Positions 9,171 through 60,539 of a DNA stretch of 64,000 nt are shown here, piece after piece. The DNA lies in the NCBI GenBank assembly GCA_016748015.1, contig JAAOMT010000135.1:867085-931084 (forward strand), given 5' to 3'. Source of the DNA: Geosiphon pyriformis uo1 (Eukaryota; Fungi; Glomeromycota). The position numbers and the translations under genes were made by a program. The notes below the pieces were generated by a model. It was given only the letters and a program-made list of their open reading frames with translations. It did no database searches and was not told the DNA's origin. Numbering within the stretch: position 1 is the first letter of the stretch; each line of letters starts with the position of its first letter.

Positions 9171-9232
9171 ATCAACAAAAATCAAGTATAAATAAATACA
9201 CCATTCTCAAAACAGAGGTATCTTCAATCAAT

Positions 9233-30639: not shown

Positions 30640-33600
30640 AATAACTATGATTGGTTCCAGATCTCATGAAATCTTATCTGGTTGAATTAGTATTCTTTGT
30701 ACTCCTAGTTGTGGAATGTTATTGGTAGATGATGATGCTATCTGGTGGTATTGTTTCAGTTAATTACCATATGCTGCTTTGGCTAAGATTTTGTTGTCCC
30801 ATCTTAATTTATAAGCTCCATTTCCAAGAATTTTTTCTATATGAAATGATCCATCCCATTTGGGGTCAAATTTTCCATTCCATTGTTTTTCCTCTTTAGT
30901 ATGATGTAAAAGTACTTTGTCTTCAATCTTGAATTCAACTGGTTTATTTGGTAATTGGTTATTATGTCATTTTTTTTGCTTCTTTTGAGAGTTTTGGATG
31001 TTATTAGCTGCTTTTCATCATCTGCTTTCTAGTGTTTCTATTAAGTCATATGTTCTTTTCAACAATGTTTCTTGGAAATTAGCTTCTGTTATTGGTTTAA
31101 TTGGATATGTGTTGACCTCTATCTTAACTGGTAATGTTGCTGTCCTACCATATACCAATTCAAATAGTATTGCTTGTGTAATATCTTGTCTCATTGTTCG
31201 ATAAGCAAATAATACTAATGGTATAAACAAATCTCATTTGTTTTGGTTTTCTTGACTGATTTTAGTGATTGCTTCACACAATGTTCTATTGAATCTTTCA
31301 ACTAATCTATTGGTTTGTGGATGATATGGTGATAATAATAGTCTTTTTATCCCAAATTTCTGACTTAATTTTGTTAATGTTTTATTCACAAAATGAGTTT
31401 CTTGATCTGATAGTAGTTCTTTTGGACATTTATGTCAACATATCAAATCTTGATGGATGAATTTGGCAACAGATTCTGCATTTGCTCTTTGAATGGCTTT
31501 TGCTTCTGGCCATTTTATAAGATAATTCATAGCTACTGTAATATATCTATTGTCTCTACTGGTAATTGTTAATGGTCCAACTAAGTCAATTCCGATATAG
31601 TCAAATGGTTGTTCCACTTTGATTGGTCTCAATAGTTTACTGGGTTTTGTTCCTCCTCTTCTTTGACAAGCATCACAGTTTTGAACATACTGGATAATGT
31701 CTGGATACATTGATGGCCAATAATATCTTTTTCTGGTTCTTTCTATGGTTGCTTCTTTATGAAAATGTCCTGCTGTTAGATCTGAGTGTATGTTGTTACC
31801 AGTAGAATTTTAGCTATTAATTAGCATGAAATTACCCTTATAATTTCTATAATTCATTAGTATATTAATATCATTTCAAATTATCATTTATTATTTAATC
31901 AATTATCACATATCACGATTCAATTAAAATAATCTAATTAGTATAACAGAAAGTAAGATGATCAAATTACACAATACCCTGAACTTTGTAACATTCAAAA
32001 ATTCGCCGAAATTTACAGAAATTTGCCGAAATTTATAAGAAATTCGCCGAAATTTACAGAAATTCGCCGAAATTATGAATAGTTCACCCAAATTAATCAA
32101 TAGTTCAGCGAAATAACTTGNNNNNNNNNNNNNNNNNNNNATAAACTAGTACTACAACAAGTTGTATAAAAGAAGAGCTTTTCTCTTCTGGAAAATGTAT
32201 CTTACTTTAGATTTATTACTTAGAACCATTTCTACATACACAAAAAGAAATAAATACCAAATAATTTGAAAAACCAAATTCTTTAATTATTGCCCTTGGA
32301 AAATCCCCAAAAACCAACTAACATTTCAAAATTGATTAGCTACCAATTTCAGTAAACTGTTAGTGACTTTAGGCTTGGATAGAAAACGTTTCTCTTGACA
32401 AAATTCTATTTCTTTTACATTTCTTTTATTTTCTTTTATTTTTCTTACTATAATTATTAGGGTAGCCTACAGACAAGATTCCTGTAGAAGAGTTGACTTT
32501 TACAGCAAAGTAACTACACATTTTTAGTAAGCTTACAGACGAGCAATTCCTGGGAAAGAGTTGACATTTACTACAACGTAACTACATAAAGTAACTGGCA
32601 AGGAATTGGCTATTTCACTTATAAGCCCAGCAGTTCAAATTATAGGAGATAATTTGAAGATAAATTCAGTTATTGGAGGTTCAACTACTTCCTGAAAACG
32701 TAAATTCACAGCAAATCAACATTACCAACATTTAAGAAAAGAGACCAAAAACCTCTGGTAACAATGTTAAACAATATTGTTTCTTTTTCTGATTCTGTAA
32801 TTACTCTGGTTGGTTGGTTTGGATTTTTTCTGTCTTTTCAGTAAAGTATATTTTGATGATTGATGAAATATTTTGATTGCTGTTTTATGTTGTTTTGTTC
32901 TTTTTGAGATAATTTCTCCTTGAATGATTAAGTATTTATATAATGCTGAAGTTGTTGGTATTTTTGTGTGTTTATCTTTTGTTATATTTTTTTGGGTTGA
33001 AATGTTTTTAGATTTGTTTCATTTGTGACAATCCATCAGCATTTCTATTGTTTTTTCCCTTTTTATAATGTACTGTATAATTGAATAGTGAAAGTTCTAT
33101 TTTTTATCTGGCATGGTAATCATTTGCAAATTCTTGTTTCTGAATTAAAGTCAATCCTTTGTGATCAGTGTACACTTCAAACTTTTGGCTTAAGTATTCT
33201 TTCTATTTGATGACAGCCCAATAGATAGCTAAGTGTTCTAGTGCTGGAGTTTCATAATTCTTCTCAGCTGGACTTAAACTTCTACTGGTGTAAGCTACTG
33301 GATGCTCTCTTCTATTGGGTTTTTTCTGTGAGAGTACTGCTCCCAATGCTTGGCCTGATACATCAGTGGTAATTATGAATGATTTGCTGTGGTTTGGATA
33401 TATCAATACTGGAGCTTGGATAAGCTTTCTTCTTAATATGTCAAAAGCTTTTTGTTGGATTTCTGTCTATTTGTACTTCACATTCTTTGTTTGGAGTTGG
33501 TGTAATGGTTGAGCTATTTTGGAAAAGTCTTTAATAAAGCAGCAGTAGTATCTGGCAAATTCCAAAAATACTCTTAATTTTGTGAGATTATTTGGTACTG

Positions 33601-34330
33601 GAAAGTTCTTGACAATCTCAATCTTGTCTGGATCTGTTTTGATTTTATCTTTGCTTACCACATGTCCCAAAAACTTGAATTCAGTTTTTCCAAAGAAACA
33701 TTTGGTCACATTTAGCTTTAGTCTGGCTTTTCTTAATCTTTCAAACACTTGTTGGAGATGATGCAAATGATCATCGAATGTTTTTGAGAACACATTGGTA
33801 TCATTCAAGTATACAACTACTGATTTCCATAGTAATCTATTATAGACAATTTCCATGAGCTGTTGGAATGTTGCTGGAACATTCATCAAGCCAAATGGCA
33901 TGACTTCAAACTCAAAATTTCCTTCTCTTGTGGTAAACGCTGTTTTTTTTTTGTCAGCTGGATCCATAGCTACTTGTCAGTAACCATTATCTAAATCCAG
34001 TATTAAGAACCATTTATTTCCTCCAAAAGTGTTGAATAGTTTTTGGATCTTTGGAGTTAGATAGCTATCACTTTTTGTTACTCCATTTAGTTTCCAGTAG
34101 TTTACACAAAAACAGATTTTCCCATTTTTCTTACAGACTAGTACTACTGATGATGACTATAGACTTATTGATAGCTGAATTAGCCTATTGTCAAGCATTC
34201 AGTTAATTTTTTGCTGAATAATCTCATGGCTAGTTAGTGGTACTTTGTATGTTCTTTGTTTAATTGGCATCGTATCTCCAGTTTTGATCTAATGCTGGAT
34301 GATGTTAGTGTGGCCAAATTCATTTTTGCT
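30640..34330 (-). pseudogene. pol: RT, RNase H and integrase of G3
   Basis: KTAFTT..MPFGLMNVPATFQ, VVYLND, TTDVSGQALGAVL..VAYTSR, CDACQR, IGIDLVGPL, FAYRT..FELVYGR; split by the LTR at 31794-32763. Confidence 0.93.
31794..32763 (+). repeat. Young LTR (family E) inserted in the G3 integrase; contains an assembly gap
   Basis: TGTTACCAG..CTGGTAACA, TSD ATGT; CpGs retained (AATTCGCCGA repeats); N run 32121-32140; near-identical to 56207-57293 in reverse. Confidence 0.9.
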
Positions 34331-34844: not shown

Positions 34845-35270
34845 ATTGATCCAAATCCCTGTATTTCTCTTGCTATCATACCTAATTCTTCTCTTTTTCT
34901 CACTGAAATTAACTAAGCTATTTTCACCAGAGGTAAGAATATTGCTTGTGCTATTTTTTCATTTGGCTCTATAATATAGGTCTTTTCTGAGTCATTTTGT
35001 ATCATGGCAATAATATTCCCTATGTATTCCACATCAATTATTCTTCCTCTGATGTTGATTCCTTTTTTTGCTAAACTACTCCTAAATGCTAATTGAACTA
35101 TGATTGTTGCTAGAATTTCCAAAGCTATTTTGAGATCAATATATGTGCACAAATTTGGTTCCAATTTGATGGCTTCCTTCCCCGGATATCTTAGATCAAA
35201 CTCTGCATTGGTATTATGTGTGTGTTCTGACATGATACTTTTATTATTATCATTATACCATTTGAGTTTC
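34845..35270 (-). pseudogene. dUTPase domain of G3, between protease and RT
   Basis: NAEFDLRY, RSSLAKKG, GRIIDVEYIGNI, EKIAQAIF, REIQGFGS: all five trimeric dUTPase motifs. Confidence 0.92.
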
Positions 35271-36479
35271 TGCTTCTTAGAGAGATCAGGAAGCACAATG
35301 TATATTTTGGGATTTGAATCAGAGTCTGAATCGTTAATATTTTCATTGCCATATTGCATAGAGCTGGAACTGGTGTTTTTATTATCATTGTTGTCGGAGT
35401 TTGAATCAGGATTGAAAACTGATTCTGATTCCAATGTGCAGTCGCTAATTGGTTCTTCTTCTGAGATTGTGTAGATCATGCATGGTGGTGGATTGTAAAT
35501 AAGATCACACTTATTACAATATTGAAAGTCACAGGAAATTAAGCAATGTTGATATAATCAAGTATTCAACTGCTCCAAACACTGCTCTTGTTCTTCTCTG
35601 ATAGGTGCTAGCTCTTGATAATGTTCATAGAATTGTTCTGAATCTAAGAAATTTATGACTGGTTTTGGGTCCCAGTCAAGTTCTATAGATTCAGATAGGT
35701 TATTTTTTATTGTTTTTATTTCTTCTGGAGTCGCTCCTTCAATTTTGGCAAGTATCATTCACCAGATTTTGTTATCATCATGTAGACACCTATTCAGACA
35801 TTTGACAGCTTGTCTCCAGACAGCATCTATGGGTGTTTTTTTTCTCACCCAATTGCTTATAAGAATCATATATTGACATGATTTGTTACATATTTTTTTT
35901 TGCCCAGAAATGTTGTTTTATATTTCTTCATTCAGAAGAGTTTCCTCACAAACCAAGCAGGGTTTGTTATCCCATTTTTCTACTCATTTTGGTCTTTCAA
36001 AGCATTCTATAATACACACATGACAGTAAAATTTGGTCACCATTTGGTATTCTTCATTTTTGCCACAGCATACACCCATTAATGACAATTTTTTGTCACA
36101 ATCAACACACACCAGTTTTGGACAACAATAAGCAGATTGTTGTGGTGTAGTGTAGGAATTATATGTGGTGGTGCTGGTGGATATTGATTTTTCTTTCTTC
36201 TCCTTTCCTTTTTCTTTTGTCTTTTCTTCTCATTCCCAAGCTGGTTTTTCTGAATCATGGTTGGTTTCTTAGTTTTGGTTGGCATTCCAGATAAGTTCTT
36301 CTCTCTGCTTTTCTTTGCTGTTGTCATCTCATGAAGGTATTGGTAGCAGCTCATTGTGTTCTGTGTTGGCTCAGGAAACTTGGTAGGCTTCCTAGGTAGG
36401 TTTCTTCTCTTCTTCCTTGAATTTGATGAGTGGTGTTGTTGAGTTAGTGGTCTTGAAATGACCACACATGGTTGGTACA

Positions 36480-40237: not shown

Positions 40238-43200
40238 GTGCCTCAGATTATAAAAAGTGGCCAAATTATAAAAATGAAGGTTTTAATCCAACTATAGGAT
40301 TCTAAATGCAAATAACAGATTCTTGGTAAAAAAAAATCTAATTTCAATAATGCATCTGCGACACTTTTTGCCTCTTACCTCCAACTGATGATTAATAATA
40401 AAGGCTGTCAATTTGATCCTCCACATACTTGCATAATCACATAAAAGATAGCACAATATTATGTTGTCAAGTTTTCTAAACACAGCAATGTCTATATCAA
40501 TTGGAATATTGATATAAAATACTTTGCACAATATTAGGAATATTAGAGTGAAAGTCAACTGCAGTTTTTTAAAAAATGTTCTGATCATCATAAGTCGTGG
40601 AATTCAATATGTAATATATATAGGCATGCAATGGCTTTTAAATTAATGTGGCCATATGTTGTTTCTAAGGAAAATCTATCTGTTGAAGATTACTTAAAAT
40701 GGGCCCAAAATGAAACAGATCTTATGTTTAAGTTAAAGTATGAACAAGTTTTTTTTATTTACAAGCAATTATTAACTTTTGCACTGGAGTTTGTTTCAAT
40801 AGGTCTTTATTAAGACTTGTGGCTAGACAAATGTTTGCACCAATTTGGTCTGCTTAGTGCCATCTTATTTACCAATTAATTGAAATTGCTGATAAAAAAC
40901 AATGACTACAATTGAAGCCTAAAGTTTGCAAGCTGATTCAAAAAAGAATTGTAATTTCTTAATCTAAACTTTCAAATCAACATCAAGACCATAATGCAAT
41001 ACTTGAAGAAATTAACAAAATGCTCAAATTGTTGATTTCTTCTACACCTTCACAATGGCATTGGAAAATTGCAGCACATAACTGTATCAAATTTGAGAGA
41101 TTGTATACTAATCTCTTTAATGTCATCAGATATTCTAAAAGTAAAATATACAGGTCTCATACATGTCCTAGTTTTATTGTTGAATCAAATTGATTTCGAG
41201 TTCAGATAAAAAAGACACAGTTTGTAAATCCAAATGTCTCTAATCGTGTTTTTCATGATATTGGCCATGAATAGATATTAAGTAAAAAAATGAAAAAATT
41301 CAGTAAAATTGCACAGATGAAAATAATAGACTTTTTTAAAACAAAGTGAATTAAGAAAACATTGTTAGGTACTTGGAAACCAATTTCAGTAACAAATGAA
41401 AAAGCAGATCATCAAAAAATATAAATCTGTTAATAAAATCACAACTATTACCTATTATTAACTTTTTAATACCTCTTTTAAGTGATTATGTTTTCAAAGC
41501 TTATCAAGTTAATTGTATGACAGCCTAATAAATATTTTTTAAGAAGTTAGAAATATATTGTATTGTGTACAGTTTTGTTTATCTTGGATTGAGTATATTA
41601 CCATTTATAATTGGCATTTTTAAAACATAATATGTTGAGTCTAGGTCTGAATTTCTATTCTGCATGATTATGTTTGGATTATAAAAAACATTTAACACAG
41701 ATTTATTTGCCCCAAAAAAGTTGATTTTTAATACATCTTTAAAACTATTAGCCAAACTTTTGCTCACTAATACTAAATATTGGTTGAATGATGAATATAA
41801 TTGCTAGTATGGAGCCTTTTTTTAATCACAGATGCCAAAGTTGGTGTAAAAATATATTTATTGGGTATATATTGGAATCTTCATGCTCTGAGTTTTATTA
41901 CTGGTCACATTTCTCTTCTTAAAGAAAGGTAAATTCGAATTCCATTCCCAATTGATTTACTCGAACAATATCCTATTAACAAACTTGTTCCTGGAAGATC
42001 TCATTGGCCCATTATTCTCGTTTGTAGGTTTGTTAATTCTTTTTCTTAATATGGAAAAAAAGTAATCTCATTAGCCAAAGTTTAATTAAGAGTAACTTTA
42101 TTGATACCTGCAGCAATAGCCTCTAAAGCATTACTAGCTTCTAAAACACCACCAGTCTTCAAAGCATCAAGAGCAACAGTATTGTACCATATGTCAACTA
42201 TTATTAAAACTCTCATAATATTCACAAACAATAAGTCAAATATAATAGTTCTGTCATTGTCTTCTGATGGCAGTAGCAGCTTATAAAGAAGAAAAGTAAT
42301 TGAATATTGTAATATTTCAGAAATTTTGTTTAGTGTTCTACAATCATTTCTAGAAACTTCTCTAATTTTTTTTACTACCATAAAAAGAATAATTTCCATT
42401 GACAAATTGGGAAATCTCCCTAACTGTACATGTCTAATTAAATATAAGATAACATCTGATGTTCATATCTAATATCATATGATTATAGTGTGACTATAAA
42501 AAGTAGAAATTATTTATATTCTGCTATCATATTTGTGGAAATAGGGACTATAAGGAGATATATATAATAAAAGTGACTATAAAAAGATAATATTATATAT
42601 AAATGGTTTTGGTTTTTAAAAAAATATGATTATAAGAAGATAATGACTATAATCAGAGGGACTATAGAGAGAGTTCACTGTACTTTAATGATTTATTATA
42701 TAGTAATATAACTTTAATAATTGCTAATTGGCTAAAATCTGATTAATCAGCCTCTAAAAATTAAAGATTAATAATAAAAGTAGTTAATTTTAAACTTTAA
42801 TAACTTTATAAAATATAATATAATTCAAAAAATTAAACTGTAAATATAAAAGAAAAAAACTTAATCTATTATATTTATGATTTAATTTTTTAATATTATT
42901 AAAATTAGAAGATTAAATATAATTTAAAATTATATAAATTGTTTGATAACTATAAATAATTTATATCATAATTGTTTTATAATTGGTTTTATATTGGTTT
43001 TTTTAAAATTTAAATTAGTGTTATTAATTAAATTTATTATTAAATTTATTCATATTTTGGTTTTTTTAGTTATAAAATTAGTTGTTGCTTTTTTTAAAGA
43101 TTAAAATAAAATTTATTTTTAATTATAATTTTTTATTAATAATAATTTCTAATTTTTGTTTTTATATTAGAATTTGGCTCTAATTTTATTAATATAATAT

Positions 43201-43574
43201 TTATAAAATGTTTTTAAGAAAATATTAGAGATTAATATTTTAATAGTTTAAATAATTATTATTTAACTTTAATTATAAAAGTTTTTTAAATATAATAATT
43301 TAAGTTTTAAAAGATTGTTTTAAAATTAATTTAAAATTTTTTATTATTATCTAAATAAAAAACCAATTAATTACAAAAAAATATAATTAATATAATAAAA
43401 AATAATATAATAATACAAATAATATATAATAATTAATAATAATATAAAATAATTAATAATAATAAAAAATAATTAATAATATTATTAAATAATATAAGAT
43501 AGCATAAACTAATATAAAATAATAATTAATAATAATAATAAAATAACATAAAAAATAACAAAAAATATTAAGTT

Positions 43575-45260
43575 TTAAAATTTATTTTATTTTATTAATT
43601 AATAAATAAGACTTAAATACAATTTAATATAATATATTAGATTAAATAATTTTAACTAAATATAAATTATATGTTTTCTATATGTAATTAGTTATTTAAA
43701 TCATTCAAAACAATATTATATTAAATTTATAAAGAAAAATTTATCTTAAAAAATATTTTATTTATAATAGTAATTAAAATACTATTTTTAATAAAACTAC
43801 TTAACTAAATAGTAGTTGTATTTATATTAAATTTAACAAAACTAAATTAATGTTTTCAAAAAATAATTAACTTAATATAAAATTTATTATCAAGTAAATT
43901 AACTTCACATCTTTTTATAAGATTAGTATTAAATTTATATTTAGTTTTAACAAAAACCATATTTACAAAAAGCTAATTTATAGTCTTATCAAAAATAAAT
44001 ATTTTACTTTAAATAATACAAACCAAAATTTTAAGTTTTATATATAAAACAAAAAAAATGTTTAAAAAAATAATAATTAAAATAATTAAGAAGCCAATAA
44101 ACTTTATAATAGACTTAATCAAAACAACCAAACTTAAGATATAAAAATTTAGAAAATTTAATTTAGACTTAATAACAGAATTAACAGCAAAAACAATTAA
44201 AAAAACAGCAAAAAAAAAATCAAAGAAGCAAAAATTATAGTATAAGTTTTATTATTAATAAAAATAACACAAAAAATCTAAAGTTAATAACAAATTTAAG
44301 AAAATAAAACAAATATAATCATTAATTTAAAAAACCATATTATTGATTTCAAAAACAATATAACTAAAAAAAAATTGACTAATTTAGTTTTAAAAGTATT
44401 ATGTAAAATAATAATTTCTTTTTGGTTGAAAAAAAATCCAAATACTGTTTTTTTTTTTATCAATACAAATTAGCAATTAAAAGCAGTAATAACAAAAAAA
44501 AATTCTTAAAATTAACAATAATATATTGTTATAAGTTAATAGATTTTAATTTTACTAAAATAATAACACTAAAAATACCAAAAGTATTTTTAAATTATTA
44601 AAAAATATGTTAACAAAGATATTATAAAATATAATAAAAAAGGAAAAAAAAGCCAAAAGCCATCACAAAAAATTTAATATCTTAAGTATGATTAAAAAAA
44701 AACTATTAATAAAAACTTTAATAACAGCAATTAAAAAAATCTTAAAAACAAAATTTATATAAAACAATTTAATATTGTTTTTTAAAATAAACTTAAATTC
44801 AATAAAGTTAGACAATATATAAAACAAAAAATTAACTAAAACCAATTTAATCTTAAAAATAATATAAGACATCAAAGTAAAAATTACTTATCCAAAAAAT
44901 CTTTAATAATTAAAAATTGTTTTTCAAATATTATTAAAGACAATATTAAAAAACAAAGAAAAAAAAATTAATTTAGTTTCTATTTAATCAGTTTAATTTT
45001 TAAGATCAGATAACTCAATAAGTTGTTTTGCTTTTAGAACTAGTAATAATTTGCTAAAAAAAATCATATTTGCAATATAACTAATAATTAATCTTAATTT
45101 ATTTTAAGAAACATATTATTATTGTTGTTGTTTACATTAAAAAAAGAACTAATTGCTATTAAAAAGATTTTATCCAAGATTTTATCTAAAATTACAAAAA
45201 AATTTAATGTAAAAATATTATTATTTAAATTAAAAATAATATTATTGTTTATTATTAAAA
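43575..45260 (-). mobile_element. Extremely eroded LINE relic
   Basis: 43590-43720 aligns with the LINE 3' UTR and tail at 60550-60680 and 49760-49880; right boundary uncertain. Confidence 0.45.
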
Positions 45261-45760: not shown

Positions 45761-47142
45761 TCAACGTCTCGTCGGTGGTGGTGGAGTATTAATCTGACCA
45801 GCGTATACCAATAATCCTTTGATTTGTCGGTAGGCAATTTTAACATAGCGTGGAATCCTCGTTTCAGCAGAAGGCGCCAGAAAAACCTGGTCGAGTCGTT
45901 CACTTACATTTTTGAAGGCAAGTTTGGTAAAAGGATTCATGTGGTAACGGAAGCGGAGGAAGAGTAGGTAAAAGAAGAGGGTGATGAGCCTGATCTTCCA
46001 TCTATAGAAAAAGAAGATTATTAGAATAAATGTTGGAAGGAATCAACACTCTTGAAATAATGAGTAAATGCATGGATTTTAATTAAAGGCTCAGGTAAAA
46101 GTGAATATTTTGAAGAAAACTGAATAAGAATCGTCAAAGGTAAAAGGGTTAATTTCTTTAAGCTCATCCGAGAGGGTCCTTGTACATACGTAATTATATA
46201 GGCAACCAATCCAGATGTAATTATAGCTACTTCAGCAAAGCTGACGGATCGCATCGCTCCCTCATAGTTTTTGAGGACCCAATTCTGGAGTCCTTTTGAT
46301 AAATCAACAAATATCTTTGCATTCCCGGAAACTGGTGCATTTGAATTAATAAGTAAAGGTGCAGCCTCGGGTACAAATGTTGGAATGATATTGGAACGAA
46401 AATAAGTAATTAAGTGGAACAATGAAAAAGTAGCGTAAGGTATTGGTGTAACTATACGAGGAGAAAAAGGTGAAACAAAGTTGTCAAACCTCGTTATGAA
46501 AAAAGATAATTTAAATACTGTTCATCCCAGACTTACCTAGGATTGGGGGATTAAACCACCAGCATACCGCTAGCCCAAGGTAAAAGAGATTTTCATCTGT
46601 GTTCAGACGTTGAAAGTATTCTCGATCAAGTTGGGGTATCTAAAGGTATTGAATGAAAATTTGGCAAATTTAATAATTGCTCCAAATAAAATTATTCTAC
46701 TACACTTATCACCTCTATTTTCTCCAAACGATTTGGTTTTAATTTTGACAGTAAATTCTACCACCATTTTGATTCAAAAACCGAAGCCAAAAATCATAAC
46801 TATTTCCCTAACTTACACCATATAATTTATAGACAACAACGCTATAACTCAGCATAGCCCCAGCATAAATAAGGTAATAAAAAAATGTGGCTTTTGGCGA
46901 GAACACGAACGAATATAGGTAATAGAGAAGGGTGGAAATGGTAACGATGAAGTGCCCGATCCACCAAATGAATTGAGTGTGCTGTGTGGTAGTAGATAAG
47001 TAGGAATTAACATAAAGATTTAAAGCTCTCGAGGGAATTCACTGTTCTGAATTAAGTGTTAAATATTTAAACTCTCGCTTTTGCAAACCTTCACAAGGTT
47101 CTTTATGCGGTCCACCAAAGGCTGGCTTGGAGATGGCGGCAT
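45761..47142 (-). CDS. POM33: TMEM33/Pom33/Tts1 (UPF0121) family ER/nuclear-envelope membrane protein, 274 aa, 5 exons
   Basis: Exons 47089-47142, 46817-46981, 46537-46639, 46190-46451 and 45761-46001, all GT-AG and in frame (825 nt). Motifs QFIWWIGH, GAMLSYSVVVYK, DENLFYLGLAVCW, PYATFSLFHLITY, FLRFRY. Confidence 0.92.
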
Positions 47143-48556
47143 TTTGGTGCTGGATTTAATAAATGAGAAAGTAAAAATATGTCGAAGTTATCAAAAGAAC
47201 TAAGAAACTCGACGATGGTGAAAATGAAAGGTGAAACCAAAAATAATTGAAAAGTCAACACCCTGAACTTATAATTATAATTAATGAAGTATTAGATTGT
47301 TTTTCTAGGTCAATGATTGTGTGGGAAAAGCGAAACTTCAACAGATGATAAGATAAATGATGATTTTAAAAACTTCCTTTCTAGCTTTACCAGAAACCAT
47401 ACGTCATTCATCTAAAATTATTCGCTCATTGTTCTACCATGTTCACAAATAAACAAATCTCCTTACATGTTACTTTTTGTGTCACCAAACAAGATTTATA
47501 AGTGAATTAAAGAATACGTATTGATGATACTGACCGTTTTGGCGTTATACGTTAGATTGAAAAAAACTGCAAATGATGATCGATGAAGCAAGCATCATTT
47601 GTAAATGATGACTTCATGATGGGGATCCTGATTACGATGATGCCAAGGTTCTTGGGACAAAAGAAACTGTCAAATTTTTTGATGACGATTTTTTCAATTG
47701 GCCATGCAAGCATCGAAAAACAAACTCCAAGCATGATTACTTTTATGACCAAATGCTATTGAGACTACCATTGTCTTGTAAAATGGAATAGGCTCAGATG
47801 TCATGGCTAGTGTGTATCAAACATGCGACATACTGCCTAGGTAATCAAATAATTTAGAAATTACCTCTTTATTAAAATGACGGTAATTAACATTATGACA
47901 AAATGAGATTGATTGAGATTCCCGAGGTTTCCTAATTACAGGTATTCAGTAAATTCGATTGGTGATTAGGCGTATACTGTGTTATAATTCTATTGCAAGG
48001 TGGTTTATCGCGTACGTCCCCTATGTATCGTTTCTCGGGAGATGTATCAATTATGCACACATGAAAAATGAATAAAAGTCGTGATTTATGATCTTGAGAA
48101 CTGAAAACTTGTGCGGTTCGAAGAAGCTTCATATATCGAACCCCTTTGTGTATGTATAACGATATTACATTTGGTAGTACCTAAAAAAACGATGGTTAAG
48201 CCATTATATTATAAATGAAGTTAAAATTAAATTAAGAGCTTTTTTCTTTCCTCTAAGATTAATCATAGTTTTATTGATTTTGGCGGAGATTTTTCTTTTC
48301 GTATCAGATAGTACAGCCAGATTTAATCAAAATGTGGATAATAGAAGACTTCAAATTCTAGCAATTTACAGATCTGTCAATATAGGAAATTAATATATTA
48401 CAATATTTAATTCAGCACCGTGTACCTCCAAAGAGTCATCCTCTCGGTTGATTGTGAGCCAATAAGTTATACGTCTCATTTTCCGATGAACCCTTTAATC
48501 GCAACATTTAAAACCGGAGATGGTCCCATCATTTTTTCTCACTCATTGTTTTTCTG

Positions 48557-48694
48557 CAGGACATCGGGGTCCCAATAAAATTAATTATCAATTTGATCAT
48601 CGATATCAAGCAAGAACTTAGGAGATGCGGTATGCAATCATCAGGCCGTTCTCACTGTGAATCCGAAGCAGCTACGGCGAACAGCAATGTCCTG
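48557..48694 (-). ncRNA. Candidate structured RNA (possible Fanzor omegaRNA scaffold)
   Basis: Begins about 30 nt after the Fanzor stop. 10-bp closing stem CAGGACAUUG/CGAUGUCCUG and inner GCUGUUC/GAACGGC; the G-U pairs form only on the minus strand. Confidence 0.35.
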
Positions 48695-48726
48695 AATCTT
48701 CATCTTGATCCCTTAACTCCAGATCA

Positions 48727-49185
48727 TCATAATTGTTCATCATTTTTAGAGTTCATGTGAAGGAATAGACAGCGGATGTCATGGGCAGCATTTATGTCCC
48801 GATTCCAGAGGCTCCAAAAGGAAAGAATGTTAAAAAGAAAGTTTAGGAATTTGTGAATTTATGGCAATGAAATTTACCAAACATGTTCTTGCATATTGAG
48901 CGACCAGATTTGTAACGATTTATCGATCCGTTCATCATATGTTGAACACATAATTCTTGTTCGATACTAATCTACAAGTCGACCTCTTTGCCCCAACTTC
49001 TGGTTTAACTCTCGGTACAAGCCCTTGACTGGTCCTTGAAAGCTATTTGAAAGTCTTCCATCTTCATATGTTACTACTGTTCTTGGATTATCAGTGATCC
49101 GCTCATGCATCTTATTATAGCCCCGAGTGCGACTTCCATCGTAGATGGTGCCAGCGGATAGTTCCGTGAAACGCGAGAAACGCAT
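48727..49185 (-). pseudogene. Fanzor (TnpB-like RuvC nuclease) C-terminal fragment with one intron
   Basis: TVVTYEDGRLSNSFQGPVKGLYREL...RLVD*YRTRIMCS (RuvC-II VDEYRTS..CS with GAG>TAG); GT-AG intron 48812-48877; then in-frame LWNRDINAAHDIRCLFLHMN (RuvC-III). RuvC-I absent. Confidence 0.8.
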
Positions 49186-49408
49186 AATCGTAAGCACATA
49201 AGTTATATCTATTGTCTAATATAATTGTAAAAATCAAAATATGTAATATTGATATGATTTTTGGAATTAAGTTAAAGTTTGCTAATTTATAATAATATGC
49301 TATTATGTATTTGTTTGTTAGTAAAAAACAATATTAGAATTTTTTTATTAACTAAAAAAAATTGTTTCATAATATATTTAAGACCAAATCAATTAATTTT
49401 TTTGATTA

Positions 49409-49570
49409 CAGTAGAACTTGTGATAACTAATCTTCTCATAAGTAATAATTTGTAATAACTAATCTTCTCATAAGTAATAATCTGTAATAACTAATAAATT
49501 AACTAATTTTAAAAACAATTAAATAGTAATAACTAATAATTTTTTATTAAATAATAACTAATAATTTTCA
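49409..49570 (+). mobile_element. Orphan terminus of a pogo/Tigger-like element
   Basis: TA-CAGTAGAACT followed by repeated ATAACTAAT/ATAAGTAAT subterminal motifs; partner end not found. Confidence 0.45.
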
Positions 49571-49744
49571 ATAAAATTTCTTATATATATTTAGTATAGA
49601 AAAGTAAAATTTTATATGACTATATTTAAAATTATTTAACAATTTATATAATTTTTAATATAAGAAAAATTTATTAAAAATTATAATTATATTATATATT
49701 TTATACAAAATTTATTATTATTATTTTTTAATTTATTAAAAACA

Positions 49745-52700
49745 TATTTTTATTTTATTTAATAAGTAAGATTTAAATATTATTTAATATAATACATTAA
49801 ATTAAGTAATTTAAACTAAGTGTAAATTATGTATTTATTATACATAATCAGTTATTTAAGTTAATTAGAATAATACTATATTTTTAAATATACAAAAATT
49901 ATATTTTTAATATTTAAAAAAAATAGATATAATTTGCATATATTAAAACTAATTTTAAAAATCTTAACAATCCTAAGCAGTTTGATTATACTATTAAACA
50001 ACACAGATAATAAGCTAGTAACAACCAATAATATAGTTTTATTATGTAAAATTATATTACTTCTCTTTATAAAAGCTTGGTATTTAAAACAAACATATCA
50101 AATATTGCTTTTATAAGTTATATTAAAACTATACATATAATTTATAATCTTATAATTAGTAATTTTAAAATTCTTAAAAACCAAAAAAAACTTATAGAAT
50201 CAATTTTTAAAAACAAATTTTTTACATAAAACAAAATACACAACAATATTAAATAAGTATAAAAAAAGCAATTAGAATATATATAATAAATATTTGTACA
50301 AATTAAATAATATTTTTTAAATAACTACATAAGTATTTAACAGCTTTTTGTGAGTTTTTACATCTATTTTACAAGAAAAAATGTGGTCTAAAAATTCAAT
50401 TTTCTTATAATACAAACATAAAACATTATAATAATATTTGTTATATAAATAATTATAAACAGTTATAAGCAGTTTATAATACAATATCTTTATAAAATAA
50501 AAATGTGTTTCAGCTATAATTTTGTTTATAAATTTAACTACCATATAAAAATTAGAATGCCAAACCAATAATAATTGAACTTAGTTTATATCTTTAAGCA
50601 ATTACTATTAAAAACTTTAATATTAGATTATATTTCTTAATAAACATAATAAATTGTTTAAAAATTTTTACAAACAAACTGTTTTATATTTTCAAAAACT
50701 GTTTTATTACTAGTTTTAATAAACTATTTACACATTTGAACTGAAAATACCACATTTAAAAATAAGACTGTAATAACCAGAACATTAATTTTTTTATTGT
50801 CTAGAATACCAGAATAATTTTTGACTTTATATTAATCAATATTTAAATTTTTATTTTTAATAATATTTACTATATATTGATATTCAATCTAATAATAATT
50901 TTGAAAATCTGGTAAAATTAAAACCAACTTTAAATAACATGTGTTTGAAATTATTTAACTGTCAAAAATTATTTTAACTACATAAAAAAAAACATATTCT
51001 AAAGCCAGCATAATAGTTTGCAGTTTAACTATTGTAAAAAAACTAACTTAAACATTTTGACCTCCAAATTTTGATTTAAATCTTTAAAAAAAACCATAGT
51101 ATTAGCTTATATATTAGCAGTATTTAAATTGTTTAAAAAACCATTAGTAAAAACAAAAAACAGACCATATTAATATTAATTAATTATCTTAAACTAAATC
51201 AAACTTATATAAATTCAAAACATTTAAAGACTAAAAACCAATATTTAAAAACAATTTATTATAGTAAAAAATTAAGTCATTTAAAAACTAAATAGCTAAT
51301 ATAAACTAATCAGAAACAAAGTCTTTAAAATTCAATCTTTTTTAGTATTTAAAAAATTTTCAATCAAAAATACCACTTTTTTTATTATGTAAATGTTCAA
51401 TAAAAACAATATTAACATTAAAATTCTATCTTAAAATTAAAATGTTAAGTATAAAAGACTATCTAATAATAAATTATAATCACAAAAAATATAAATTACA
51501 CCAACTAAAAAATTATTTACTAGAATAATTTTAAAACAAACTGAAAATCACAAAAAGTAAAAAAAACCAGTTTAAAACTTGTAATTTAAAAAACTTATAA
51601 TTAAACAGCTGGCTTAAAAAACTATAAACATTAAAAAAACTTAACACAAAAGCCAATTTGTATTTAGCTTATACTTATTTAAAAGTTTTTAAATTACATA
51701 AAAAAGAATAATAGATTGTATTACTTAAAAAATTCAAAAACAAATCAGCTTTTAACTTTAAGCTTTTATAAATTAAAGTTTTCTACTTAATATATATATT
51801 ATTGAAAACAAAATTAAACTAAATCTTATAACTAATAATAAAGTAAAGTACTATTAAGACCAAATATAAAAACTGCTTATTAGAAATAGTTTTTTTTAAT
51901 ATTTTGCCAATAAAAAAATTTAAGATTTAAATAAGTTTTTATTAAGCTAGATTTTAATAAATTCTTTGTAAATAGAAAAATACTCAAATATTTATAAAAT
52001 TTTTTTTTTTAGCAACTAAAATAGACAAACTACTAATTAACAAAAAAAATTCATAATTTTATAATTAATTAAAATAGCTATTGTCTTATTATTATTAATT
52101 AAAATATTATTAATTCAAAAAAATTTATTTGTAATATTTAAAATATATTGAATTATAACTTAATTATTGTTTACTTAAATTGTATCATTAACAAATATGC
52201 TAACAATAAAAAAAATATTAAATTTATTTGACTTTTTACATATTTTATTTTAACTATAAATTTGAAATCAACTTTATATTTATATATTTTTTTTTGTTTT
52301 TAACTTTATATAAAAAAAATTATAAAAAATATGTTAGAGAAAAAAAAAGAACATTTTACTTTACTTTAATTTATTTGTATATAATAGTTATTTATAAATT
52401 AAAGTCAATTATAATCTGAATAATTTGGTTATTATAAATGCCACCAAAATATTTAACAAATCTTTTACATATTTTAACTCAAATTAAACTGTTTTTTAAG
52501 AGTTTTTAATTTACTAAATTATATCTTTTAAACATATTCTATAAAATTAATTAAAGTTTATAATTCTTTTTAAAAACATTTTTTATTATTAAACCAATTG
52601 TAAAGATTAAAGATTATATAGTTATCTCTTTCAAAACTAAGAAATTGTTTTTATAAAAAACATCAAACTTACTATAAATCAAAAAAATTTTGTCAGATAA

Positions 52701-54050
52701 TATTTTGAAAAATAATTTTTGATTAGTTTTAATTAGAGCAATAAGTTTAATATTAGTCAAAATTTTTTTTTATTTATACAGCTTAAAAATTATTAACACT
52801 CAAACTTTTTTCCAAAATTTAAGAACTAATTTACTCTTTAAACAAATATTAAGAAGATTTAACAACAAGTTTAAAACTAAAAAATCATAATGTTTTTAAA
52901 GTTTATTTGAGATTTTAAACAAACTAATAGCTTTTTTATTTGGCAAATTTATAATAATACTTATTATATTATCAAAATTAATTTTATCTATAACATCAAA
53001 AAAAGTATTGTTAACTATATAAAATAAAAGCAAATATTATTAACATCAAATATTTAGAATAGTTTTCAATACTTTATACTTTTTTATCTATTTTTTTATA
53101 ATAAAATTTATTTTAAACTTAATTTCTTCAAATTTTAGCTCCAAATTTCTACTATTTATTAAATAATTCAAAATTACTTTATAAAAAAAATATTTTAAGA
53201 CACTTTTAATAGTATAATCTTTATTATCTTTAAAAATTTTATTTTTTATTAATAATAGCATAAATTTTTACAACTTTTGTTTATTAGGACTTAATAAATT
53301 TAAGTACATAATATATCTTTTTTATTTTAATTAACTTAAATTTAATAATATTGGCCAAAAAACAAATAACTTTTTAAATAATATCTTATATAAAATTTAA
53401 ATTAGAAAGTTTTTTTAAATATCCAAAATTTTTACCAAACAAAGTAATATTTACCAATATAATATTCTTAAACTAAGTTTATTTGGTCATATTAATCTTC
53501 TTAAAATTGTATTTTTATTAGTTTTTATTAGTTTAATTGCAAAAAATACTTAAATACTTGTTTAAAACACCACTTAAATTAATAAAAACAAAAATAACAT
53601 GATAATTAATATTAAAATTTTCTTATATTTGATATTACCTTGTTAATTATAATATTAGCCAAATTAGATAACATAAAAATATAATTAATTATCTTTTTAA
53701 TTTTCCTAAAGTTTTCTTAAATAAAAATCTTTGCAAATAGATTATTAGTCAAAAAATTGACCAAACCAAAATTCAAACACTTTTTAAAACTAGTATTATA
53801 TTTAATATTATTTTTATTAAAATTATTACTAAGAACAATGAAAATATTTTTATTAAAATTATTACTAAGAACAATGAAAGTATTTTTATTAAAATTATTA
53901 CTAAGAACAATAAAAGTATTTTTATTAAATATATTAACTATAAAAGAGTTAATAACAGATGTTTAATTTAAATGTTTTCTAAAAGATATATTTATATATA
54001 GTTTTAATACTAAAATCAATTGTTTGTTTTTAAACAATAAATAAACCAAT
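49745..54050 (-). mobile_element. Eroded LINE relic
   Basis: 3' UTR match to the other LINE copies at 49760-49880; residual coding-like texture; 36-bp tandem triplication at about 53805-53930; extent approximate. Confidence 0.5.
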
Positions 54051-54765
54051 AAAAGTCTACTAACAATTTTTGTTATTTTTAAAACATATTAAATCAAATA
54101 ATTATTTATAATAATTGTAATATCAATATTTATAAAGCTAATATTTAAATCAGAAATAAAAACTTAATATTCTTAAATTTATTTGTAATTCAAAATTTAA
54201 TACTAAAGTACAACTTTATTTCTGTAACAATTAAAATATTATTTTACAATTTTTTATGTTATTTGATAATATTATTTTGTTTAACAGAAATACTTATTTT
54301 CTTAATATTATATATAACAATTTTTCAAGTAAGATTAATTATTAAAATAATAAAAAAGAAAATACATTTAAAATCAAAGCCAAACTATCAAATTTTGTTA
54401 ACAAATTTATAACCAAACTAAATAAATTATTTAGTTAAGTTTTTAATCTGTCCATATTTAAAAATGTTGAAAAATTTAGCTTTATTGCAATTTTTTATTA
54501 ATAAATATATACAAATTTTTTATTATTATTATATTATTTACTTGATTTTGTGATAAAAAAATAACCAACAATTAATATTCAGAATTAGATTAAAAAACTA
54601 TTAATACAAATATGTTTAATTTCTTAATTAACTTACTAACTTATTTTTTAAAACTAGAAAGATTATATTTAATATTTATAAAATGTATTTTTATTTTACT
54701 TATAATTATTGGAAAAAATTTAACTTTACTTAAAAAACCAAACCAAAAAAAAATCCAGAAACTAC

Positions 54766-57700
54766 TATTATAAGTGTTTTTTCTTTGAGAATTATACTAT
54801 AATTAATTTCTAATATGGTTTTAAGTTAAATAATAATATTAAAAATTATCTAATTGTGATATGTTAATAAGTATATCAGTTTCAATAAAGACTATTCTTG
54901 ATTTATATTAGATTTTTATTTAATATATTATTACTATTTTTCTTATTTAAAGACTTAAAAATTAGTTCAATAAGTTTTTTCTAACTTTTCACAAATATTA
55001 GATAATTTTTTCTGATAAGTACTCTTTTATTTGATTTAATGTATTATGTAATATTTCTGTTAAAATTGCTGTTAATAGCTGTTACTATATTAATTTTCCA
55101 AAAAAAATTTCTGTTATATCTTTATACTTTTGATTGTGTCTTTTTTGAGACTTTTGTAAATATTTTTTTTTTATATTATGTTAATATTAAATATCTGTAT
55201 TTTTTTATTTTTAATAAATTTAAAAAAAATTGAAAAAAATCAGAATTCAACAAAATTAATATTCAAAAATAATTTTGATCAAAGATTATTTTTTTAAAAC
55301 ATAAAAAAATTATTTCAGATTTTTAAGTTATTTATCAATTTTGATTAAAGTATTATTACAAATAAATTTTATGTAATTATATGTAATTGCTATTTTTCTG
55401 ATGTGTTTTTAATTTTGTTAAGCTTAAATTTTATTTATATTTCATTATTATATTAGATATTTTATTGTTTTTTAACAATAAAAAATAGTAATAAAGAGTG
55501 TAATGATTTTTTTTATAGTTTAAATTATAAAAAAAAATTTCCAATTTCATTAATCTTAGTATTAATAAATATTATAATACAAAGATTAGAAAATATGCTT
55601 TCTAACTTTTCTTGAAATTATAATTTAATTTTTTTATCTTTTTTTCTTTTATTTCATTTAATTAATTTTTTATTATTCTGTTTTTTTTAGTTAGAAAGTT
55701 ATTGTATATATATATATTTTAAATTATATATAATTGTATTTACTCTAATTGATTAGTAAATAATTATTAAGTTATTGGGCTTTTTATTTAACTATAAGTG
55801 CTTTTTGGCTTATTTGTTTATAATCATATTAAATTAAGTACATTTGTGCATATTTTGTATACTATTATGTACACATCACATTTTCTAATTTTATTTGTTG
55901 ATTTGTACTATTTATACTATTATTTAATAATTAATTAATATATTATAATATTATTATTTTTGATTTTTGTTAATTTTTATCAAATAATAATATTCTTTTC
56001 TTAAGATTAAGCTCTATTAAAATTGATATGTATTTTTTTAATGTTAATATCTAACATAAAAATCTACATACTTGTTTAGACTATTTGTGTTTATAAGTTT
56101 TGGAATTTGTTATTAATAAGCTTTTTAATTTTATTAAAAATAAGTATGTTATTACCCAAGTAGAAAAACCAATCCAAAAACTATTGAAAAAACATGATTA
56201 AAACGTTGTTACCGGAGGTTTTTGGTCTCTTTTCTTAAATGTTGGTAATGTTGATTTGCTGTGAATTCACGTTTTCAGGAAGTAGTTGAACCTCCAATAA
56301 CTGAATTTATCTTCAAATTATCTCCTATAATTTGAACTGCTGGGCTTATAAGTGGAATGGCCAATTCCTTGCCAGTTACTTTATGTAGTTACGTTGTAGT
56401 AAACGTCAACTCTTTCCCAGGAATTGTTCGTCTAGAAGCTCACTAAAAATGTGTAGTTACTTTGCTGTGAAAGTCAACTTTTTTACAGGAATCTCGTCTG
56501 TAGACTACCCTAATAATTGTAATAAGAAAATAAAAGAAAAATAAAAGAAATGTAAAAGAAATAGAATTTTGTCAAGGGAAACGTTTTCTATACAGGCCTG
56601 GAGTCACTAACAGTTTACTGAAATTGGTAGCTAATCAATTTCGAAATGTTAATTGGGTTTTGGGGATTTTCCAAGTGCAATAATTAAAGAACTTGGTTTT
56701 TCAAATTATTTGATATTTATTTCTTTTTGTGTGTATAGGAATGGTTCTAAGTGATAAATCTAAAGTAAGATATATTTTCCAGAAGAGAAAAGCTCTTCTT
56801 TTATACAACTTGTTGTAGTACTAGTTTATGAACTTGCACTTTTTCTNNNNNNNNNNNNNNNNNNNNAATGGTTCTAAGTGATAAATCTAAAGTAAGATAT
56901 ATTTTCCAGAAGAGAAAAGCTCTTCTTTTATACAACTTGTTGTAGTACTAGTTTATGAACTTGCACTTTTTCTCTTTGCCCAAATTCCGGCAAACTAAAG
57001 ATACATTTTGATGAACTACAAGTTATTTTGCTGAACTATTGATTAATTTGGGTGAACTATTCATAATTTCGGCGAATTTCTGTAAATTTCGGCGAATTTT
57101 TAAATGTTACAAAGTTCAGGGTATTGTGTAATTTGATCTGTTATACTAATTAGATTATTTTAATTGAATCGTGATATGTGATAATTGATTAAATAATAAA
57201 TGATAATTTGAAATGATATTAATATACTAATGAATTATAGGAATTATAAGGGTAATTTCATGCTAATTAATAGCTAAAATTCTACTGGTAACAACGTGAT
57301 AACATAGAAAAAACATGATAACAAAATAATACAGAATAATACATAATAACTCAGAATAATACATAATAACTCAGAATAATATAAAATAATATATAATAAC
57401 ATGAAATAATACAGAATAACTAGCCATAATATAGAATAATTAGTTATAATATAAAAGAATAAAACAATAACAAAAATAGTAAATAATAGCTAGTAATAAT
57501 AAATAATTAAAAACAATCTTTTAAAACTAAAATATATATATAAAAACAAGTAGTTTTAGCAAATAAAAAAAGAAAAACAGAAAATAAAAACTTATTTTTT
57601 TAAAAAAACATATTTTAACTTTAAAATTTTACTAAATTTTTTTTATTTTATTTTTTCTATATTTTTATATTTACAATTAAATAAAAATATTGTTTAATCT

Positions 57701-59361
57701 ACTTGTATATAATTTCAAAATTTGTATTATTAAAATTAAATTAATTATGTTTTTTATTCTTATTACAGGCCAAATGTTTTTAGCATAAATAGCTTTAAAA
57801 CTCTAATAACTTAGACCAATTGCTTTTGATTATAGCAATTGATAATATTAATTTTTTTATTTTATTTTTTTTATTTTATTTTTTTATTTTATTTTATTTT
57901 TTGGTAAAATAGTAATATTAAGAAAATTAACTGTTTGAGAATAAACTTTATAATAGCCTAGTAAAAAAAGAAAGTTTCTTTTAGATTTGAATATTAATTT
58001 TATTTTATTAGCTTATTAAAAGAGCAAAAAAACAATGTCAAATCTTAACAATTATGCTTAACTAACTTAGCTTAAATAAGTTAAAATTAAATCTTAAAGT
58101 AAGTACCAAATATTATAAATGTTTTTTTTTTAGAAATTATACTATGATTAATTTCTAATATGGTTTTAAATCAAATAATAATACTTGAAATTATCTAATT
58201 ATAATATGCAGATAAGTATATTAGTCTTAATAAAGACTATTCTTAATTTATATTGGATTTTTATTTAATAAATTACTATTATTTTTTTTATTTAAAGATC
58301 TAAAAGTTAGCTTAATAAGTTTTTTTTAACTTTTAATAAATATTAAATAATTTTTTTTGGTAAATATTTTTTTATTTAATTTAATATACTGTGTGATATT
58401 TTTATCAAAATTGTTATTAGTAACTACTGCTATGTTAGTTTTTTAAAGTAAATTTTTATTATATTCTTATATTTTTTATTGTGTTTTTCTTTAAAGCTCT
58501 TGCAAATATATTCTTTTTATATTATATTAATATTAAATATCTGTATTTTTTTGTTTATAATAAAGCAGTATTTTATTTCTAATAAATTTAAAAAAGATTG
58601 AAAAAAAACAGAATTTAACAAAATTTGTATTTAAAAATAATTTTAATTAAAGATTATTTTTTTAAGACATGAAAAAACTATTTTGGATTTTTAAGTTAAT
58701 TGTTAATTTGGCCAAGATATTACTATAAATAGATTCTATATAATTATATATAATTGCTATTTTTTTGATGTATTTTTAATTTTGTTAAGCTTAAATCTTG
58801 TCTGTATTTTATTGTTATATTAAGTATTTTATTGTTTTTTAACAATAAAAAATAACAATAAAAAATTTGGTAATCTTTTTTGTAATCTGGATTATAAAGA
58901 AAAAAGATTTCTAATTTTACTAATTTTAATATTAGTAAATATTATAATACAAAGCTTAAAGAGTATGCTTTTTAGTTTTTTTTTAAAATTATAATCCAAT
59001 TTCTTCATCTTTTTTTCTTTTTTTTTATTTAATTAACTTCTTAGTATTCTGTTTTTTTTTAATTAGAAAGCTATTATATATATACATATTTCAAATTATA
59101 TATAATTGTATCTATTTTAATTAATTAATAAGTAATTGTTAAGCTATTAGATCTTCTGTTTAAATATAAGTGTTTCTTAGTTTACTTATTTGTGATTATA
59201 TTAAATTGGATATATTTGTGTATATTTTATATATTATTGTGTACATATTATGTTTTTTAATTTTATTCATTAATTTGTGCTATTTATACTGTTATTTAAT
59301 AATTAGTTAATATATTATAATATTATTATTTTTGATTTTTGTTGATTTTTATCAGATAATA
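54766..59361 (-). mobile_element. Ancient, internally deleted LTR element G4
   Basis: 1.2-kb direct repeats 54766-55989 and 58111-59361 with eroded termini (TATTAT..ATAATA); TSD CTAC/TTAC; PBS remnant AAGTACCAAA at 58101-58110; PPT and GAGCTC-motif remnant at 55990-56022. Confidence 0.75.
56207..57293 (-). repeat. Young LTR (family E), second copy, with assembly gap
   Basis: TGTTACCGG..CTGGTAACA, TSD ACGT; N run 56847-56866 with about 108 bp duplicated on either side. Confidence 0.9.
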
Positions 59362-60539
59362 TTACCTAAAAAAAAATCTATTAATAATAAATATTCAAAA
59401 TTTGTCTTTAAAAACTCTTAAACAAATAACAAAAACAGACTTTTTGGTATAAATATAAGTCAATTTAAACTGGTTAATAATAATAAAAAAAGTCTTTTTC
59501 TTTTTAAACATCAGTTTATTATTAACTAAACTATAGTTAAAAGAAGTATAATTATATTTGTTACAATTTGAACAGATAATCAAAAACAAATGAAACCAAT
59601 AAAGTATAATATTCTTTATAATAAAGATTATAAATATTATTTTAATTAAGCCCTAAATTATAATATACTTAATACAAGTATAATTAACAGAGTTGTAATT
59701 AATCACACTAATTTATTTACCAATTAAATTAATAATATTTTAAATATTATAAGTATTTGTTTTTACAAAAAGTATATAAAATAAAACTTTAAATTTATTT
59801 TTAATATCTTATAATTGTTTATTAATAGTAAGTTTTACTATATAAACTGTATTTTTTTTGATAAAAATAGATTATTTAAAAGCCAAAAAATTAACTTGAT
59901 TTTAATTATTTAATTTTATAATTACTTTTTATCATAGGTTTACTAATTGTATTTTAATTAACTTAATAGTATTTAAATTAATAAACACAGTTTATATAGT
60001 TTCTAAAGATGTTTTACAGAAATTTTCTTAATTATTACTGCTTAATTTATTTGATTATTTATTAAATATTTAAAATTGGTGTTTATTATAATACTTTTTA
60101 TATTTGTTAAATCTGCTATAGTTATTATTGTTTTTTTAAAAATAAAAAATGTCTGAATTATTCTGCTAAATTTTAAGAAGATAAAAATTATGTTAAAACT
60201 ATTTATACCAAAAAAAAATTTTTAATAGTCTTTAATTTCTTTTAAGCTAATTTTTCAAACACAACAAAAAAATTAATATTTAAAAAAAAAATTGCAGATT
60301 TAAATAATTACTAAAAGCTTTAAAAAAAAGAAAAAAAAAGAGATATTTAAAACACTATTTTTATTATTATTGTCAATATTAAAATTAATTTATTCAAAAA
60401 ATTTACTAAATATATACTTTGTAACAGTTTTTTTTGGTCTTTTAGAAATTATATCTATATTTTTATTTTTTTATTTTTTATTACTACTAATTTAAAAACT
60501 GGTTTTTTCTATAAAAAACTTTTTATTTATGTTTATACT

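Follow-up and report, generated by a model that had tools for sequence, protein, structure and literature searches.

Fanzor1 proteins are transposon-borne, RNA-guided DNA cutters of eukaryotes. Their guide RNA (omegaRNA or fRNA) is encoded at the 3' end, where it overlaps the end of the gene, and their hosts are transposons of several kinds (hAT, Mariner, Helitron and others) with defined ends. Prokaryotic TnpB genes are not known to carry introns. It is already published that fungi contain Fanzors, that these have introns and that their RuvC site is rearranged (PMC10530073). Most TnpBs carry the catalytic Glu at the canonical RuvC-II position and not at the relocated site (PMC10530073); Fanzors have Gly or Pro at the canonical position and use another Glu approximately 45 residues downstream (Jiang et al., PMC10530073).

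We analysed a 64-kb stretch of DNA (the window) from a very AT-rich contig of the Geosiphon genome (128 Mb in 792 contigs). On the minus strand of the window, at 49195-48672, the C-terminal approximately 140 residues of a Fanzor1 protein are preserved, and we are highly confident that the locus is a Fanzor1 pseudogene, truncated at its 5' end and altered by point mutations and frameshifts. It is an ordinary relic of a known family. Like the Fanzor1 proteins SpuFz1 and PpFz1 (8gkh, 9cf0), the subfamily to which it belongs has a DPG-type RuvC-I, no Glu at the canonical RuvC-II position, a Glu in DE[YF]xTS, a zinc ribbon, a WNRD RuvC-III, a eukaryotic host and introns. Unlike these two, the window copy consists of the last approximately 140 residues, broken by stops and frameshifts, and the zinc-ribbon insert of the subfamily is much shorter.

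Extent and composition of the remnant

The original prediction had read a single minus-strand frame from 49197 to 48727, and this frame is present: it runs as ...VVTYEDGRLSNSFQGPVKGLYRELNQKLGQRGRLVD, a stop, YRTRIMCSTYDE...MQEHVW, a stop and ...SLWNRDINAAHDIRCLFLHMNSKNDEQL, closed by a further stop. Along it follow in order VVTYEDG, GPVKGLYREL, LVD, the TAG, YRTRIMCS and the stretch ending in HVW, after which come 66 nt with in-frame stops and then LWNRDINAAHDIRCLFLHMNSKNDEQL with its stop. The coding remnant is longer than stated at both ends, in other frames: upstream it reaches approximately 49195, and downstream it closes with the TAG of 48674-48672, which C709 shares. The parts of the locus are listed below; A2 is a profile of long relatives introduced in the next section, A3 an alignment of the window with the genomic copies C709 and C687 and the metagenomic contig L054, and X1 a public sequencing run.

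49127 to 49195, minus strand: upstream piece AFLAFHGTIRWHHLRWKSH, in a different frame; A2 positions 134-152, collinear with the next piece
48973 to 49140, minus strand: core piece before the stop, ...RTRGYNKMHERITDNPRTVVTYEDGRLSNSFQGPVKGLYREL...RLVD; A2 positions 152-211, E 7.6e-7
48967 to 48969, minus strand: TAG stop at the relocated catalytic Glu codon (family motif VDE[YFH]RTS)
48878 to 48966, minus strand: decayed RuvC-II and zinc-finger stretch, YRTRIMCSTYDE...IWSLNMQEHV; weak collinear A2 match at 214-241, and alignment A3
48812 to 48877, minus strand: spliceosomal intron GT..AG of 66 nt, from the X1 contig; site common to relatives
48733 to 48811, minus strand: exon 2, the RuvC-III motif and the residues following it, LWNRDINAAHDIRCLFLHMNSKNDE; A2 positions 247-271, E 1.3e-6
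48672 to 48739, minus strand: C-terminal tail NNYDDLELRDQDEDSGHCCSP and then TAG, in a shifted frame; the same tail and stop in C709
48615 to 48671, minus strand: non-coding 3' stretch common to the window and C709 (blastn of the window against L049)
48426 to 49255, minus strand: minimum extent of the spliced transcript, with X1 taken as RNA (X1 record 3, 764 nt)
49440 to 50400, no strand assigned: high-copy, CpG-free, AT-rich repeat in the position expected for the remainder of the gene (own-genome DNA search)

The upstream piece is covered by tblastn with the relatives P0002 and P0010 (49195-49127), and in the DNA comparison with C709 a frameshifting deletion of approximately 11 nt near 49125-49135 joins it to the core piece. 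The counterpart of exon 2 in L054 reads TLWNRDVNAARNIRHIFLHMNANNGE. A further frameshift lies near 48735, and the old tail stands beyond it; tail and stop of C709 read NNSDDLEVRDQDEDAVHCPSP and a stop codon, while L054 instead runs on in frame as NNGERLEPFQ. Judging from the sequence, the original stop of the ancestral gene was probably the one at 48674-48672. Homology to C709 extends no further than 48615, a position that may mark the right end of the old element; a single paralogue shares the 3' region. The locus had been described as hidden, yet NCBI nr already lists its first open reading frame of 72 aa (49185-48970) as a predicted protein.

At the other end, the similarity stops at approximately 49195 and the repeat, which is unrelated to the gene and has replaced its 5' part, starts at approximately 49440. 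The missing N-terminal part was sought elsewhere in the 64-kb window with A2 and with full-length relatives and was not found; tblastn of the full-length relatives gave no match in the window beyond the remnant itself. The repeat is CpG-free with 13-15% GC. A first look at the genome yielded 1,738 candidates, and the 40 candidates scored gave 74 matches, the best of them approximately 70-91% identical and starting at query positions of about 223-320. The CpG observed/expected ratio is approximately 1.0 in 48400-49215, and the flanks at 49216-53000 and 43000-45000 hold zero CpG at 11-15% GC. Over the whole window, blocks of 8-18% GC (10000-16000, 26000-27000, 42000-45000, 49216-56000 and 57000-60000), devoid of CpG in those checked, alternate sharply with islands of 30-39% GC and a CpG observed/expected ratio of about 1. 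The AT-rich blocks look like the outcome of extreme C-to-T decay confined to repeats.

A two-step profile chain to Fanzor1

The exons were searched separately, and the locus was read through either by genome search or with X at the stops in the unspliced frame. Taken singly, the three stop-free pieces had no match in Pfam or NCBIfam, even at E 10, pieces 1 and 3 found noise only among PDB sequences, and six-frame scans of the whole genome with PF07282 and the NCBIfam TnpB model NF040570 detected many loci but gave no match at the window locus. A profile (A1) of the 76-aa first window piece aligned with its C709 counterpart retrieved 31 proteins at E<=1e-3 among 1.84 billion representative proteins. 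The best match was the window's own 72-aa open reading frame, followed by short metagenomic gene calls; the closest match outside the Geosiphon genome was P0002 (E 3e-16). PF07282 scored above the Pfam cut-off in six longer matches (P0012, P0016, P0017, P0020, P0024 and P0029). One further A1 match, the 642-aa repeat protein P0003, was put aside as a spurious low-complexity match. The longer relatives comprise 416-785 aa and carry, in this order, VGLDPGR, VA[FY]G.G.FSS.S.GH..P.K.LY, LVDE[YFH]RTS..CS.C, a second Cys pair and WNRD.NAARNIR. The series DPG ... DE[YFH]RTS..CS.C ... WNRD.NAARNI thus occurs in homologues in the order and spacing that had been claimed for it.

Profile A2, built from eight of the long A1-matched proteins, matched Spizellomyces punctatus Fanzor1 (8gkh) with E 6.4e-17 and 65 bits over 271 profile positions from RuvC-I onward, Parasitella parasitica Fanzor1 (PDB 9cf0) with E 1.4e-16 in two stretches (profile 4-142 and 141-279) and Guillardia theta Fanzor1 (GtFz1) with E 2.5e-6 (profile 8-260). 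The Mimivirus TnpB-like protein L79, Cas12f and TnpB matched at the zinc-ribbon end only, at 2e-9 to 1e-3. Fanzor2 or TnpB is not closer than Fanzor1, as L79 scores 40 bits over 59 positions versus the 65 bits over 271 of SpuFz1. With prokaryotic TnpB (IS200/IS605, IS607; ISDra2, 8exa) and Cas12f, the subfamily shares the RuvC-plus-zinc-ribbon C-terminus, and its full-length members match PF07282; the A2 similarity to TnpB and Cas12f is nevertheless weak, extending over approximately 50-60 residues with E 5e-5 to 1e-3.

When A2 was run against all 3,974 stop-free six-frame pieces of the 64-kb window, it matched nothing except the remnant. Two pieces matched strongly, 49215-48970 at E 7.6e-7 (profile 152-211) and 48858-48730 at E 1.3e-6 (profile 247-271), the latter independent of the original query. 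Another two matched weakly and are collinear with both strong ones, namely 49333-49118 (aligned 49183-49127, in another frame) at E 1.6 on profile 134-152 and 48966-48877 at E 4.9 on profile 214-241. The A2 genome search, which read through the locus, gave it 71.9 bits (E 2.6e-18); this alignment spans profile 152-272 and includes one TAG and two TAA.

There is some circularity in the match of the first piece to A2, since that piece had served to find the A2 members; there is none in the match of exon 2, which was absent from the query, or in those of A2 to the PDB structures. Since TnpB models miss the locus and the single pieces match nothing in the PDB, the Fanzor1 assignment is a two-step profile chain: the pieces find PF07282-bearing proteins, and the profile of these matches solved Fanzor1 structures. 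By this route the proposed match to a TnpB/Fanzor profile was obtained, while PF07282 itself misses the pieces.

Loss of the nuclease and persistence of the intron

Judging from the relatives, the ancestor would have been a protein of several hundred residues, with a single RuvC site of three residues (one Asp in VGLDPGR, the relocated Glu in VDE[YF]RTS and a second Asp in WNRDxNAA) and with a four-Cys zinc ribbon between the relocated Glu and the RuvC-III Asp. By analogy with the described systems, it would have cut DNA under the guidance of an RNA from the 3' end of the element. The window copy retains the last approximately 140 residues only.

In the subfamily relatives, the G of VAFGDG occupies the canonical position, and the relocated Glu lies in VDE[YFH]RTS, just before the TS..C start of the zinc finger. 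Consequently, the claim that the catalytic Glu codon is now TAG was right, as the TAG stands at the relocated Glu of VDE[YF]RTS (pattern of PMC10530073). The E of VVTYEDG, on the other hand, is not a residue of the family: the relatives have G there (VAFGDG), and the codon is GGA in C709 and GAA in the window. On this codon comparison, the E of the window YEDG is a secondary GGA-to-GAA change without catalytic meaning. The TAG is common to the window and C687, C709 has CAT in its place, and the X1 contig is identical to the genome across the codon. Relative to its relatives, the window copy has changed Ser to Arg in the TS motif and the second Cys to Tyr in the first half of the zinc finger, and the third and fourth Cys of the zinc ribbon were lost by two 2-nt deletions (alignment A3 with C709, C687 and L054). 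The frameshift suspected at the second CxxC is therefore real, since C709 reads WSLKVCKNICL and L054 ALKVCKKDTCL where the window is 2 nt short at two places. One of the four zinc-ribbon Cys is kept in the ancestral frame; the other three are readable in C709. The RuvC-III Asp of NRD is kept (WNRDINAAHDI). The RuvC-I Asp (xGxDPGxx), present in the relatives as VGLDPGR, is absent from the window; as the window copy is truncated, its absence speaks to the state of the copy and not to its descent. With a stop at the Glu codon, a wrecked zinc ribbon, two more frameshifts and neither RuvC-I nor the N-terminal parts that bind RNA and DNA, the locus does not encode a working nuclease.

The proposed 66-nt GT-AG intron at 48812-48877 begins with GT, ends with AG and holds in-frame stops, and it coincides to the nucleotide with the segment skipped in run X1. 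Over 47000-49300, this run contains a 764-nt contig composed of 48426-48811 and 48878-49255, with no sequence differences and no other letters. The contig joins 48811 directly to 48878, and the ends of the skipped segment are CT..AC on the plus strand, that is GT..AG on the minus strand. X1 is not recorded as an RNA run; we infer that it is one from two GT..AG joints (one per strand), a loose contig end at 47089 and very uneven depth within 2.3 kb, where the three X1 contigs have depths of 310, 16 and 36. With X1 read as RNA, the skipping of 48812-48877 implies that the locus is transcribed and the intron spliced, and the transcript extends through the 3' region.

The intron lies at the same site in outside relatives and in genomic copies, and the gene calls P0002, P0007 and P0010 run into it directly after CL. 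The donor site is the same in all four sequences of A3 (window TTG/GTAAAT, C687 GTAAGT, L054 GTAAGC, C709 GCAAGC). C709 and L054 have CAG as the acceptor; at this place (48816-48814) the window has TGG, followed by an AG 2 nt beyond. From this alignment, the acceptor used today probably lies 2 nt downstream of the ancestral CAG. The remnant would accordingly be transcribed and its conserved intron removed at the AG 2 nt past the old acceptor, the first open frame would yield a 72-aa peptide, and the remaining transcript would behave as a spliced 3' UTR. That the relic is still expressed and spliced, with X1 taken as RNA, is the single mildly unexpected point of the locus. An intron acquired by a Fanzor gene can thus outlast the gene and still be spliced via a shifted acceptor. 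Adding the acceptor shift (2 nt) to the pair of 2-nt deletions gives an in-frame loss of 6 nt, which could hint at selection on the frame after the first damage; as such an in-frame sum has a one-in-three chance, we give it no weight.

Relatives, rival explanations and neighbourhood

Searching the genome with the locus itself, at both the DNA and the protein level, gave two decayed copies, C709:397642-398060 (approximately 70% identical) and C687:129832-130028. These paralogues retain residues that the window copy has lost, among them TS, the second Cys, NAAHNI and an LDPG-like RuvC-I. In C709 the Ser of TS is intact, as is the second Cys of the first pair, C687 keeps WDCEINAAHNIR, and upstream in both stand decayed RuvC-I-like strings (LVGLDSGR in C709, LVLDPE in C687). 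A2 finds about ten genomic loci, one of which, with a weak score, is the best locus of the abundant Fanzor family described below. Every genomic copy of the subfamily is incomplete, a C-terminal or other partial fragment, and stops occur in nearly all of them. C622 (L057) still reads MVDEFR and HWNRDVNATQNI around the same-site intron. Beyond the gene, the flanks of the paralogues share nothing. The search for paralogues recommended earlier thus succeeded in finding relatives with RuvC-I-like strings, but it found no intact full-length copy in the genome. The original prediction had valued the remnant as a good probe for intact paralogues and their host transposon; the approximately ten relatives are all decayed, and as no intact subfamily copy was found, the locus did not lead to a living paralogue or to its carrier transposon.

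The closest outside relative is a nearly complete gene of the same subfamily on an ENA metagenome contig of 51% GC (L054:625-2794). It consists of three collinear open reading frames with a gap at approximately 2126-2182 and the conserved intron at approximately 2599-2662, and it is the best available template for an intact protein with that intron. Useful entry points to a working enzyme of the subfamily are the better-preserved relatives P0012, P0017, P0020 and L054, which come from metagenomes and run assemblies, and not the window copy.

Fanzor relics are common in the Geosiphon genome. A six-frame genome scan with PF07282 yielded 124 matches (69 above the cut-off) at loci that carry the motif VSEAYTSKTCSQCG...DRDVNGARGI and IIIPPFN at the canonical Glu position. 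Examples are the following, with at least 120 others:

C701, 385626 to 386042 (L027): abundant-family locus
C404, 445697 to 446080 (L028): abundant-family locus

Most of these copies contain stops; in a few, the domain lies within an open frame of 170-200 aa. The abundant family resembles the window subfamily in domain order and in the spacing of approximately 33 residues between the relocated Glu and the RuvC-III Asp; it differs in having Pro where the window subfamily has Gly, at the canonical Glu site. The two are distinct subfamilies, of at least 124 loci and about 10, respectively. The idea that the window holds a diverged copy of the abundant family was dropped, as tblastn against 40 abundant loci gave no real similarity. 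A second, small and old Fanzor1 subfamily is thereby documented, about 10 relics beside a family of at least 124 loci.

We regard it as very unlikely that the relic stays transcribed and spliced because its RNA is useful, whether as a trans-acting guide-RNA donor, as a decoy or as a regulatory non-coding transcript by the gene island. A transcript co-opted as a host non-coding RNA, for instance as a 'ghost element' that donates omega/fRNA to other Fanzors, would account for transcription and splicing (with X1 taken as RNA) at a locus that is more strongly conserved with C709 in its 3' part than in the middle, in a genome with many other Fanzor loci. However, most of the conserved 3' stretch is the old coding tail to 48672, with approximately 57 nt of shared non-coding DNA beyond it, and the fold of the 335-nt 3' region is no better than that of shuffled sequences (z = +0.52 sense, +2.10 antisense). 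These observations lend no support to a structured guide RNA at the locus. Moreover, no intact nuclease of the same subfamily was found in the genome, and the pieces are without similarity to the abundant family, so that we judge such a co-option most unlikely. The 72-aa open frame (49185-48970) could in principle be a functional short protein derived from the nuclease, being open, transcribed (with X1 taken as RNA) and a predicted protein in NCBI nr. Against this, it is an internal slice of RuvC without any complete motif, its N-terminal third lies outside the ancestral frame, paralogous copies carry stops in the same stretch and a spliced intron follows approximately 90 nt downstream of its stop. 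A spliced intron that far past a stop usually marks a transcript for decay. We give this short protein an exceedingly small chance.

Descent from something other than Fanzor1, be it Fanzor2, a fragment of a viral or prokaryotic TnpB or a chance likeness of motifs, is suggested by the presence of TnpB, Cas12f and the mimivirus TnpB-like L79 among the PDB matches of A2. Those matches span the zinc-ribbon end of approximately 60 residues at E 2e-9 or worse, whereas the two Fanzor1 structures stand at about 1e-16, and the locus has a spliceosomal intron at a site common to its relatives; chance resemblance is excluded by the four collinear pieces and the E of 2.6e-18. We consider the probability of a non-Fanzor1 origin practically negligible. 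The decayed Fanzor1 gene remains the preferred reading, and its significance lies chiefly in annotation: the predicted 72-aa "protein" represents the first open frame within a dead Fanzor1 gene, and the locus should be annotated as a transcribed pseudogene.

Just downstream of the relic lies a multi-exon host gene on the minus strand (45770-47140), which starts with MPPSPSQPLVDRIKNLVK, encodes hydrophobic, membrane-protein-like segments and has an X1 depth of about 310. Its largest open reading frame (46021-46422) had no match in Pfam, and the loose contig end at 47089 matches sequence approximately 100 nt downstream in the same gene, as a spliced exon would. Between the relic and this gene, a plus-strand transcript contig covers 47529-48103 with a GT..AG joint at 47838/47940 (101 nt skipped), a 1-nt difference at 47559 and no long open reading frame. 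Elsewhere in the window, long plus-strand open reading frames at 3581-9889 encode retroviral protease, reverse transcriptase/RNase H and integrase, the pol of a Gypsy-type LTR retrotransposon, and a second reverse transcriptase fragment on the minus strand (33467-33967) adjoins an open reading frame with a dUTPase domain (34913-35479).
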